A stretch of DNA of 64,000 nucleotides, taken from positions 806,001 to 870,000 of the forward strand of contig MU008159.1 in the NCBI GenBank assembly GCA_010909165.1, read 5' to 3'. Every line of letters begins with the position of its first letter. Position 1 is the first letter of the stretch. The notes below the pieces were generated by a model that made no database searches, was not told where the DNA came from, and worked only from the letters and a program-made list of their open reading frames with translations. A program made the position numbers and the translations under genes. The DNA is from Anthoceros angustus. Lineage: Eukaryota; Plantae; Anthocerotophyta. Shown one piece after another: positions 22,022 to 25,356 of the stretch.

Positions 22022-23337
22022 TTCGTATCACAAATGCTTGTCAACCCGACAGGCACCTAATCAACCCTTCACCATTGCAACTGTGAACGATTTCGCCACT
22101 TACAACCTTATGTAAGCTTTCTACGGAGCCCCTCAGCTGCAACGTACACAGCATGCAAAGCAACCAAAGCTGAAGCACACAACCACAACCACTGTCTGAA
22201 ACGTTCAAGACGAGGACAAGGAAGCCATAAAACCTGGCACCAACTTCCTACTCCGCCCTGACTCAGATCCATCTCGCACCGTCAGAAGCAAATTCAGTGA
22301 GCACGTTACCTAGAGGAAAACAATTCCTGAGTTGTCCATCAGCCCGGCAGACAACGTCAGAGGCCTTGTTGGATGATACCAGACACGGCTATTTCTCCCG
22401 GGATCTCTCTGATCTCGGCGAGACCTCCACGTGGCTTCCTCCTTCTTGGTCGAGGGTTAAAGCCTAACGCCAGCCGGATCACGCGGGTTCTTGAAGGCTC
22501 CCTTCCTGTGGAAGGACTGTGTGGGCAACGGAGTCGTGTGACTCCGCTTCCGAGATTCAGGCTCGAATCAGGTACGTGGTGTTGGTGGATGCGTCATGTG
22601 CGAAGAAGCCTAGATTCTGTGATGACTGGGTGGGATGTGATTTTGCGGTCTCAATTCTGCAAGCAAAAGCTGATTCAGGGAGGGCTTCTCCATGGAATCT
22701 ATTGCGAATTCGCGACCATTAATGTCCTCCTTGCCTGGAGAGGAGATTGGAGAGTTGGTTCCTTGTGAATTTGCAAGTTAAGGTTGCTTTGCAAAAGAGT
22801 TGTCGGAATTCAGCTTCATCTACAACTGTAGTTACACATTTGCTTTTGCATCTGGTGACTTATCACTGCTGTATGCGAGCGCACTTGCGTTTGGTCCCAG
22901 TGATATGCACTGTCGTAGAATTAGAGCCTGCATGTTGGCGAATCTTCTTTGAGATATCTCACTCTCCCTCCAGATGGGGAATGAGTTTGTACTTTGAGAC
23001 AAAATTTGGAAGGCATGAGCAGTTTGGTTGGGTTTCGGTGGTGATTAGTTTCATTTGTCATCTCATCGTGACGGAGACTGCGACGTGACTTAGCTGAGGT
23101 AGGACCCATTCAACTAGGACCTGTACATCGTGTAATGGTGGCATGTGCGGTATACTTGCCAACTGGAGTTCTTCACTGTTGAGACTCTTTTTCGTTGAGT
23201 GATGCTTGGTTGTCATTGGACTCAATGTTTGTCTGTCCACACTGTTTTCCTGTTACACTCACTGAAGGAGTAGACTCCTCAGGTTGTTTCTGTTTTTTTT
23301 CTCATCTAGTGAGCAGGACCCGAGGACGCGTGACGGA

Positions 23338-24958
23338 ATGTGGCGGTGTCATGGCAGGAACAACACCGAGCTTGTCCGAAATCTCGAAAGTGGGTTTCCT
23401 GTATGTTTGCTTATGTGCATGTGTGAAGTGGGGTAATTTTGTAGATGCCATGGGCCAAGCTGCCTCTTCTTCAGCCAGCAACATTGGTCTGGTTTCCCAG
23501 CTGCAAAGTGGGTCTCTTGTCCTTCACATTTCTGTGTTACATGTTTGTCAACATGTTGGAGAACGTATGTAGTAGGAGAAGGTGTTTGCCTTTGATATCT
23601 CAACCTTAGGCCCTTTTGGGCAATCTGTACGGGTTTGGCCTTCTGAGAGAAGTTAGTGGGTCATGTTATTCAACTTTGCTTCTGCTTGGTTAGTCCTTGC
23701 CTGAGTTCTCTGACATGCCTGTGAGAAGTAGTAATATCCTCTCATGCCCTGCTGTTTGGTGTCTGTGCAGAGCATGGAATCCTTACTTCACGAGAGTGCG
23801 CTGCAGCTATGATACAGATTGACAGGGCCCATTATGTGCCAGCCGGTGGTACACCTTACGATGATTCTCCACAGGACATAGGTATATCGTCTTTATACTT
23901 TGTGGAACATTCGTGGGTGAGTGCTCGTAGGACATGTACTGCAACATCATCCATTTTAAATTGTCTGTTTCGATGTAAACTGTTGCTGTTGGTGGCAGGG
24001 TTTGGTGTGACCATCTCAGCTCCGCACATGGTGAGTTTCATGGAAAGATGACCTTTGCTGCGCTTCAGGACTTCGTTTTGCTTTCAAATGATGGGAAACT
24101 CAGTGCTGGATTTGCAGCATGGCCACTGTCTGTCCTTGCTGGCAGATCATTTGAAGCCGGGCAACTCTGTGCTTGACGTTGGTTCAGGTTCAGGCTATTT
24201 GACAGCTGTGCTCGCTTTACTGGTATGGCATGTCAGATTATCAGAGACCTGGATTCATTTTCCTTCCTGTCCTTCCCAGCATCTTGTATTTGACAGGGAC
24301 AACTTCTTGAGATGCTCTGTTGAGATTGAGAACATTCCTGGCGTGCAGGTTGGGGAAACAGGGCGAACTGTCGGGGTAGAGCACATACCAGAGCTTGTTG
24401 AAAGGTCCATCAATGCAATCAAACACGGAGCAGCCGGACACCTTTTCGATGGTGGACAACTGTCAATCCATAGTGAGACTTCACCTCAATATTTCAGTTT
24501 CGGTCTCTATAGTTTTCATCATGAACATGACAGACTCAAACTAAGATATCTTATTGCCTTCGCGTTGCAGAAGCAGATGGAAAGCTTGGTTACGCTGATG
24601 CTGCACCTTATGATGCAATTCACGTCGGGGCTGCTGCAGCAGGTCATTCGTCGAGGTCCTCATGGTGAACTTTGACAAAATCAAACTTCGTCCTCTCATA
24701 TTGCTATTGCATCGTGCAGAACTGCCAGAGGCACTGTTGGAGCAGTTGAAACCAGGTGGACGCATGGTTATTCCTGTTGGAAAAGGTTTCCAGGTTTGTA
24801 GACTTCACAGCTTTCTGGATCTTTTCTCTCTTAAGTTCATTACTTCTCGTATGACACATGATTTGCCGGAGCAGGACCTTGTGGTCATCGACAAGCTAGC
24901 TGACGGCACGATCAAGCAGCACGCACAAATGAGCGTGAGATACGTCCCGCTGATTTGA
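23338..24958 (+). CDS. PIMT: Protein-L-isoaspartate O-methyltransferase, with two candidate first coding exons (23338-23389 and 23450-23507)
   Basis: Spliced reading KHGILTSRECAAAMIQIDRAHYVP...G|FGVTISAPHM|HGHCL...VLDVGSGSGYLTA|VGETGRTVGVEHIPEL...|DGKLGYADAAPYDAIHVGAAA|ELPEALLEQLKPGGRMVIPVG|DLVVIDK...VRYVPLI*. Confidence 0.92.
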
Positions 24959-25156
24959 TGTCTAACTGGGACGCTTCTCCTTGTACTGTACATACATGAC
25001 TCCTGAAATAACGCAAGGCATGGGTGCCCTACTTGTTTGGCATGGCATTGTGTCCTCTCTTACTCCTTTTTGAACTCCACGTGCTGGACAAACTTGATTG
25101 ATTCTGTAAGAATGCCTCTTATCCATTTGACTTGTGACAGCGTATGGAAATGCCAT

Positions 25157-25250
25157 ACACAATTTAGTCCTTTTACATGTACACAATTCAGTCCTTTCAC
25201 ATGTGCACAATTTAGTCCTTTTACATGAAGGCCTTAGTCCTTTTACATGA
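25157..25250. repeat. ~23-bp tandem repeat (TACACAATTTAGTCCTTTTACATG), 3-4 copies; also at ~26873-26960, with one unit at ~30574
   Basis: Units read directly; they abut the truncated start of the SWIM/MULE relic. Confidence 0.8.
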
Positions 25251-25356
25251 AGGCCTTGGGAAATGTTATGTACATGGACATGGACTCAAGGAATGATCTA
25301 GCATCAGCCCAGATGAAGCTTCAAGAGTTTTACGAGGTGTATGATGCCTCGGAAGC

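Follow-up and report, generated by a model that had tools for sequence, protein, structure and literature searches.

A hornwort PIMT gene makes two mRNAs through a pair of identical 5' splice sites in its first coding exon, and the longer mRNA probably encodes a leader-bearing form of the enzyme

PIMT repairs age-damaged proteins, and work on seed plants has shown that the location of the enzyme matters; in Arabidopsis, a second gene and alternative splicing are involved. How one PIMT gene can supply alternative N-termini is the question raised by a locus of the hornwort Anthoceros angustus, which lies in a stretch of 64,000 nucleotides (assembly GCA_010909165.1, contig MU008159.1, positions 806,001 to 870,000), hereafter called the window, to which all coordinates below refer. 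At the 5' end of its coding region two short coding segments, A and B, follow one another, and the original prediction, made from the letters of the window alone, took them for homologous, mutually exclusive first coding exons, the second of which would begin with an N-myristoylation motif. RNA contigs show that segment B is instead an extension of the first coding exon, reached through a second, identical 5' splice site, and the resulting long form is probably translated, from an AUG embedded in segment A, into a PIMT that carries an N-terminal leader.

Judged by its exon translations, the gene is a plant-type PIMT on the + strand. The exons common to both forms (23771..24958) encode the PCMT methyltransferase core, including the S-adenosylmethionine (AdoMet) motif VLDVGSGSGYL, and the conserved SAPHMH and DAIHVGAAA blocks are present in columns that are also invariant in an alignment of relatives. 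Exon 3 alone, which starts at 23771 and encodes 36 aa, scores 21.0 bits against Pfam PF01135 (cut-off 20.3), and the stop-free reading 24052-24672 scores 49.5 bits. The latter, which covers two exons plus the intervening intron, was the query with which 783 PIMT homologues were collected, the best match being from the hornwort Nothoceros.

Part of the locus is contained in 23 RNA runs, four of which (X1, X2, X4 and X20) were aligned over 22300-25100; these four come from four differently labelled organisms and four studies, X1 being identical to the window and the others 88-99% alike. The evidence consists of assembled contigs, and since every aligned contig is spliced at GT..AG sites, they represent RNA. 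The joints 23389>23771 and 23507>23771 each occur in all four runs, with contig depths of the same order, so that RNAs containing segment B, which the original prediction had proposed to look for, are present throughout. Some contigs, 148-175 nt long, cover 23360 to 23507 without interruption, taking in the 55-nt gap and the whole of segment B, and in X1 and X20 they go on for 27 nt within exon 3. That they derive from spliced RNA, not from DNA, follows from the depth in the intron after 23507, which is zero in X1 and X20 and about one-fifteenth in X2 and X4. The acceptor at 23309|23310 is used, from the upstream donors at 22571 and 23098, whereas no joint into 23445, including 23389>23445, was found in the contigs of the four runs, in which rare forms such as 23389>23445 could be hidden. 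Splicing from 23389 to 23445 is thus not a main product, and segment B is not a separate exon, because the contigs are continuous over 23360-23507 and then jump to 23771.

Direct reading bears out much of what had been said of the sequence itself: the ATGs at 23338 and 23450, the 55-nt gap (23390-23444), the donors AAA|GTGGGT and the common phase are all in place, and either segment joins in frame to the exon starting at 23771 (K-HGILTS). The two donors have their GT at 23390 and 23508, 118 nt apart, and both segments end in phase 1; the 9-mer AAAGTGGGT has only two copies in the window, both at these donors. The joints in four runs likewise support the view that one PIMT gene gives two mRNA classes with alternative N-termini. 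Each segment was also held to have its own acceptor, and AG does stand at 23308-09 and at 23443-44, with only the former used in the contigs. Mutually exclusive exons, each with a used acceptor and donor of its own, were therefore rejected, as no joint into 23445 was seen and RNAs using donor B hold the tail of segment A and the spacer unbroken; what had been taken for the steric exclusion of two exons is in fact a single exon that can end at either of two 5' splice sites. The pattern observed, two used donors in the first coding exon and one shared acceptor, is that of a PIMT2-type switch.

Spliced open reading frames (ORFs) were derived by a script that walks the exon coordinates, and other sequences were used for the homology searches and structure models. 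In the short form, the ATG of segment A (ATG-A, 23338) opens MWRCHGRNNTELVRNLE, a canonical PIMT N-terminus, and an ORF of 217 codons. In the long form the frame shifts because the 118-nt segment is retained, its length not being a multiple of three, and ORF A stops after 32 codons at TAA 23434-36; the segment is thus no in-frame insertion read from the same start codon. A second AUG, at 23351, lies 13 nt past ATG-A, in the +1 frame within the conserved Cys-His-Gly codons of segment A, has G at -3 and G at +4, and opens in the long form an ORF of 252 codons that reaches the normal stop. The first 13 residues of this product (MAGTTPS...) are the +1 reading of the codons of segment A; they are followed by Val-Gly, which is the unused donor GTGGGT in translation, by the uncharged 12-residue core VGFLYVCLCACV, by KWGNFVDA, and then by MGQAASS..., GLVSQLQ-K and the enzyme. 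The 39-nt stretch 23351-23389 is accordingly open in two frames, depending on the splice form. The Met-Gly at 23450, which opens MGQAASSSASNIGLVSQLQ, is not the first start of frame B, since the in-frame AUG at 23351 lies upstream. It is preceded in the long mRNA by six AUGs, including the optimal one at 23351 and an out-of-frame one 5 nt upstream; the out-of-frame ATGs within 23390..23449 stand at 23403, 23413, 23419 and 23445.

The following mechanism is therefore proposed. Use of the first donor (after 23389) would give the ordinary mRNA, translated from AUG 23338 into a 217-residue, presumably cytosolic enzyme. Use of the second (after 23507) would keep the 118 nt, shift the frame and end ORF A at 32 codons, and ribosomes passing AUG-A by leaky scanning would initiate at AUG 23351 in its optimal context. 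The 252-residue product would then begin with a leader and continue through Met-Gly and a linker rich in Ser to a further copy of the first helix, by which the enzyme fold would be restored.

The same layout recurs in ferns and Ginkgo. The N-termini of the homologues fall into three groups: A-type (MSWRCHG...), in-frame upstream extensions (liverworts, mosses and Closterium) and a small B-type group. The latter comprises P0013 (from a transcript contig in Logan, with a core that most resembles those of ferns), P0033 (a Ginkgo gene model) and P0122 (Psilotum nudum, found via a cluster look-up), all three of which begin at a start homologous to AUG 23351. In Psilotum, a single Trinity gene (c23848_g1) gives both A-type P0041 (218 aa) and B-type P0122 (251 aa), which are identical over their last 199 residues. 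Together with the hornwort product, the B-type proteins share a common plan: MA-x-x-T/S, (R/K)-V-G, a hydrophobic core, Met-Gly, a Ser-rich stretch and x-L/M-V-x-x-L-Q-K/R. What ferns and Ginkgo contribute takes the form of transcripts or gene models and reaches the DNA level for a single fern transcript (L001), in which ATG-A is followed in turn by the embedded ccATGg, an A|GTGGGT that is not spliced, a spacer and ATG-GGA. Its leader of 361 nt holds no other AUG, and because a stop in frame B lies four codons upstream, the embedded AUG is the first possible start in that frame. As far as these sequences go, the layout is conserved in the hornwort, ferns and Ginkgo. The conservation looked for by the original prediction is hence found in Psilotum, another fern and Ginkgo. 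In Marchantia (L002, donor GTGAGT), Selaginella (L003, GTATGT) and Sphagnum (L004, GTACGT), no B segment was found just after donor A; the donors at that position are stronger there, and Selaginella lacks the embedded AUG as well.

The B form is nearly absent from protein databases, because gene callers mostly report the A form only. A word search that used the long exon translated in frame B gave no candidates, one with residues 1-60 of P0013 returned P0013 itself only, and a profile of three B-type N-termini, run against 1.84 billion representatives, gave one irrelevant repetitive match; B forms probably sit in clusters represented by other isoforms. Two sets of proteins outside the group may be mentioned here. 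In EukProt, P0038 and P0039 are two isoforms of one Trinity PIMT gene, one with a signal-like leader in frame A, while the other opens with MALTTTTW..., in keeping with a +1 reading of the SHGVDNNDLVN codons, and contains a helix-like SNESLVNLLQ; the pair may represent the B-type arrangement in another streptophyte, possibly with a retained intron. In addition, the angiosperm PIMT2-like proteins P0097, P0111, P0054, P0060 and P0067 carry a hydrophobic insert between an ME start and the FWTG/KNK N-terminus, which by its sequence looks like a counterpart of the segment between the two donors.

What segment B contributes to the enzyme can be approached through these B-type proteins. The Pfam PCMT profile starts at residues 42-43 of P0122 and P0013, that is, at the B helix, and the alignment with human PCMT1 (1I1N) sets in at residue 41 of P0122, opposite residue 7 of the human enzyme. 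In the AlphaFold model of P0122, residues 43-52 form a helix that is packed on the domain (predicted local distance difference test, pLDDT, about 95), and a separate, low-confidence helix at 17-35 is detached. By these comparisons on fern proteins, the helix that segment B brings is a genuine equivalent of the first one in PIMT. The claimed homology of A and B as tandem segments is plausible on the protein pattern, whereas at DNA level the two are no more alike than expected by chance once the common donor 9- to 12-mer is set apart: over the coding parts, 53% of shuffles match or exceed their score, and DNA homology beyond the donor was set aside as unproven by this test.

By hydropathy, the leader of each of the four B-type sequences has a hydrophobic core that is 12-20 residues long and free of charges. 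In the hornwort, VDA|MG matches the -3/-1 rule, and the region before the core is long and not basic. By analogy with Arabidopsis PIMT2, we infer that the leader would act as a targeting or anchoring signal, either secretory/endomembrane or organellar.

Between the window and its relatives, the stretch 23360-23507 has changed little: 2 of its 148 positions differ, whereas the neighbouring intron differs at 24 of 323 (Fisher p = 0.008) and the coding exons do so at 22 of 482 (p = 0.09). The sole change listed, 23401 G>A, leaves the frame-B protein unaltered and turns Val into Ile in frame A. Overlapping coding constraints fit these counts, small as they are. An RNA fold was also considered as the cause of this conservation and rejected, the predicted fold not being unusual (z = -0.03).

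Several points weigh against the proposed mechanism. We infer the start codon of the long form from the sequence, and AUG-A, with a purine at -3, lies upstream of AUG 23351, so that initiation there needs leaky scanning. The contigs do not show transcript 5' ends, and a promoter may lie inside the exon. With its long, non-basic n-region and a core of 12 residues, the hornwort leader is, by its sequence, not a textbook signal peptide. As Marchantia, Sphagnum and Selaginella lack the B segment at this position, several losses would have to be assumed for a single ancient origin. The leader may moreover be longer, because AUG 22373 is also in frame B when the donor at 22571 is used, giving 332 codons. 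Finally, translation from AUG 23351 into a leader-bearing form does not by itself account for the Met-Gly and the Ser at +6, which do not vary among the four B-type sequences. An alternative, proposed for the product by the original prediction, is that the long mRNA is read from AUG 23450 and that Gly2 is N-myristoylated, giving a membrane-associated cytosolic PIMT. AUG 23450 could be reached by reinitiation after ORF A or from a transcript start inside the exon, and such a product could coexist with the leader form. The PS00008 pattern, with Gly at position 2 and Ser at position 6, is kept as MGQAASS in the hornwort, MGNEASS in two ferns and MGICSS in Ginkgo, despite differing upstream residues and distances to the core; the Ginkgo version has an additional Cys that might be palmitoylated, AUG 23450 is flanked by G at both -3 and +4, and in the hornwort ORF A stops (23436) just before it, 14 nt upstream. 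A gap of 14 nt after a 32-codon ORF is, in general, poor for reinitiation, and in the fern L001 reinitiation is ruled out, since the frame-A reading ends past the Met-Gly codon and so overlaps its AUG. Add to this the six AUGs upstream, among them the optimal in-frame one and the one 5 nt away, a frame B that is open and hydrophobic upstream of Met-Gly in all four lineages, and a searchable literature in which no link between PIMT and myristoylation was found, and the lipid-anchored product, though its motif has stood the comparison across four lineages, becomes unlikely. Hardly better are the prospects of a combination in which one long mRNA gives two enzymes, the leader form from AUG 23351 and an N-myristoylated form from AUG 23450; if true, the MGxxxS of that arrangement would have been kept since the common ancestor of hornworts, ferns and seed plants.

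In the longer reading from AUG 22373, which we likewise consider doubtful, the enzyme would be preceded by about 113 leader residues that enclose the hydrophobic stretch and, as in an organellar presequence, abound in Arg, Ser, Leu and Pro. Frame B is open over 22331-22571 and 23310-23507, only 0.8% of shuffles of the 339 nt being stop-free, and the ATG at 22373, the sole one in the 5' exon, is in this frame; no indels were seen in 22345-22571 in X2 or X4, and PIMT forms of 290-335 residues with long N-terminal extensions occur in liverworts, mosses and Closterium. Yet its context is weak (T at -3), the same AUG opens in the short-form mRNA a 106-codon upstream ORF that overlaps ATG-A, the stop-free run is partly the stretch already explained by the 252-codon ORF, and the seven substitutions listed are partly silent and partly replacement changes. 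The contigs over 22300-22571 may, besides, stem from the divergent F-box gene described below, and in the fern frame B is closed shortly before the embedded AUG, at the stop mentioned above. Much less probable is that the long form is non-productive or regulatory, a poor template or a target of nonsense-mediated decay, such that donor choice tunes the amount of PIMT. Its first AUG does open only the 32-codon ORF, with seven exon junctions downstream of the stop; against this, the long form was assembled in all four organisms at depths of the order of the short form, segment B encodes a bona fide first helix in the right phase that is kept in ferns and Ginkgo, and the retained stretch is at least as conserved as coding exons. 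Least credible of all is the view that A and B are mutually exclusive exons separated by a 55-nt intron too short to splice. The spacing and the AG at 23443-44, which follows a short T-rich run, would suit it, and A+B+exon 3 would stay in frame (23445-23507 being 63 nt), but the contigs of the four runs cross 23390-23444 and hold no 23445 joint, and the fern transcript keeps the same stretch unspliced. Translation of the long form from AUG 23351 into a leader-bearing PIMT thus stands as the probable reading.

Among known systems, the nearest is Arabidopsis PIMT2, in which, according to published descriptions, two alternative donors with one acceptor flank a chloroplast-targeting peptide, and the variants reach cytoplasm, chloroplasts and mitochondria (PMC3847293; PMC12510314). 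That donor choice gives a plant PIMT alternative N-termini is therefore already published. The likeness extends, by these descriptions, to the enzyme family and to the order of start codon, two donors around an N-terminal segment and single acceptor, and one gene there gives cytosolic and compartment-targeted forms, as the hornwort gene may do by analogy. In the Arabidopsis gene, the segment is described as an insertion read from the same start codon, whereas the hornwort segment shifts the frame by its 118 nt and would be read from another AUG (PMC3847293); unlike the PIMT2 segment so described, it also carries its own copy of the first enzyme helix. In angiosperms the PIMT1/PIMT2 pair comprises a form without a leader and a form with an N-terminal extension of about 50 residues that leads to chloroplasts, mitochondria or nucleus (PMC12510314). 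What is there divided between two genes, leaderless and extended, falls in the hornwort to two splice forms of apparently one gene. The long PIMTs of liverworts, mosses and Closterium (P0030, P0051, P0044-P0049, P0022) are N-terminally extended and belong to streptophytes in which there is a single main gene, as is apparently the case in the hornwort; their extension lies upstream of MSWRCHG in the same frame and, unlike that of the hornwort, brings no second helix. The mammalian locus CDKN2A (p16INK4a/ARF) has a dual-coding exon that gives two unrelated proteins. As in that case, one DNA stretch (23351-23389) is open in two frames by splice form; in the hornwort, however, the second donor brings the phase back, so that both frames run on into one enzyme core. 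With mutually exclusive tandem exons the hornwort segments share that they are alternative, end in the same phase and supply the same structural element; they differ in that the second has no used acceptor and is always joined to the first. No paper was found on the frame-shifting version with its embedded +1 AUG and spare helix, or on its occurrence in hornwort, ferns and Ginkgo, in a search that lay outside key subscription papers.

Table 1. Coordinates of the PIMT gene and of neighbouring features (window positions)
Feature	Position	Strand	Evidence or content
PIMT 5' exon, 3' part	22300..22571	+	RNA joints 22571>23310 (X1), 23098>23310 (X1, X2)
Alternative longer 5' exon form of PIMT	donor after 23098	+	RNA joint 23098>23310
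5'-untranslated-region intron, GT..AG	22572..23309; alternative form 23099-23309	+	RNA joints
First coding exon, short form (donor A)	23310..23389	+	Joint 23389>23771, four runs
Embedded AUG (gtcATGg), +1 frame	23351..23353	+	First in-frame start of the long-form ORF, 252 codons
Stretch kept in the long form only	23390..23449	+	Contigs unbroken 23360-23507 in X1, X2, X4, X20
Segment B (second exon of the original prediction)	23450..23507	+	MGQAASSSASN, then helix GLVSQLQ; ends in phase 1
Long-form intron, donor B GTGGGT	23508..23770	+	Joint 23507>23771, four runs
Short-form intron, same acceptor AG 23769-70	23390-23770	+	Joint 23389>23771
Common coding exons	23771-23881, 23999-24030, 24118-24222, 24349-24472	+	RNA joints, splice sites
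Common coding exons, continued	24571-24642, 24720-24793, 24875-24958 (including stop)	+	RNA joints, splice sites
5'-truncated tandem PIMT copy	25355..27081	+	Matches 23610-25367; starts inside the intron after segment B, without the A/B exon
Intronless F-box protein gene, 499 codons	20522-22021	-	Pfam F-box and At3g26010-like beta-propeller

Around the switch itself, some further features of the locus deserve mention (Table 1). The longer 5' exon form adds about 13 upstream AUGs and, from its sequence, looks non-productive. One X20 contig is unspliced from 22345 to 23389; another from the same run matches the window only from 23341, with 200 unrelated bases before it that end in ...DEMS ahead of WRCHG, and looks like a paralogue or allele with a frame-A upstream extension, as in liverworts and mosses. 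The F-box gene stands head to head with PIMT, and the 5' regions of the two probably overlap, because RNA contigs bridge both. The truncated copy downstream differs from the gene by 12 small deletions (1-5 nt; 7 in exons, mostly frame-breaking) and 6 mismatches, nearly all indels between the two being deletions in the copy; none of its variants was found in the X1 contigs aligned over 22300-25100, and the copy is a pseudogene unless it is an artefact of assembly. Downstream of the PIMT stop in both copies, a 24-nt tandem repeat forms short arrays (25135-25246 and 26876-26963), and positions 27720-29980 hold another tandem duplication, which has 98-100% identity, a period near 1.18 kb and sub-repeats about 165 nt apart.

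For the biology of PIMT, the hornwort gene would represent a single-gene solution to the placing of the enzyme, built from two identical donors, a 39-nt stretch that is read in two frames and a spare first helix. It offers a compact natural example of a conserved dual-coding exon. If the design dates to early land plants, compartment-specific protein repair would predate the PIMT1/PIMT2 duplication.

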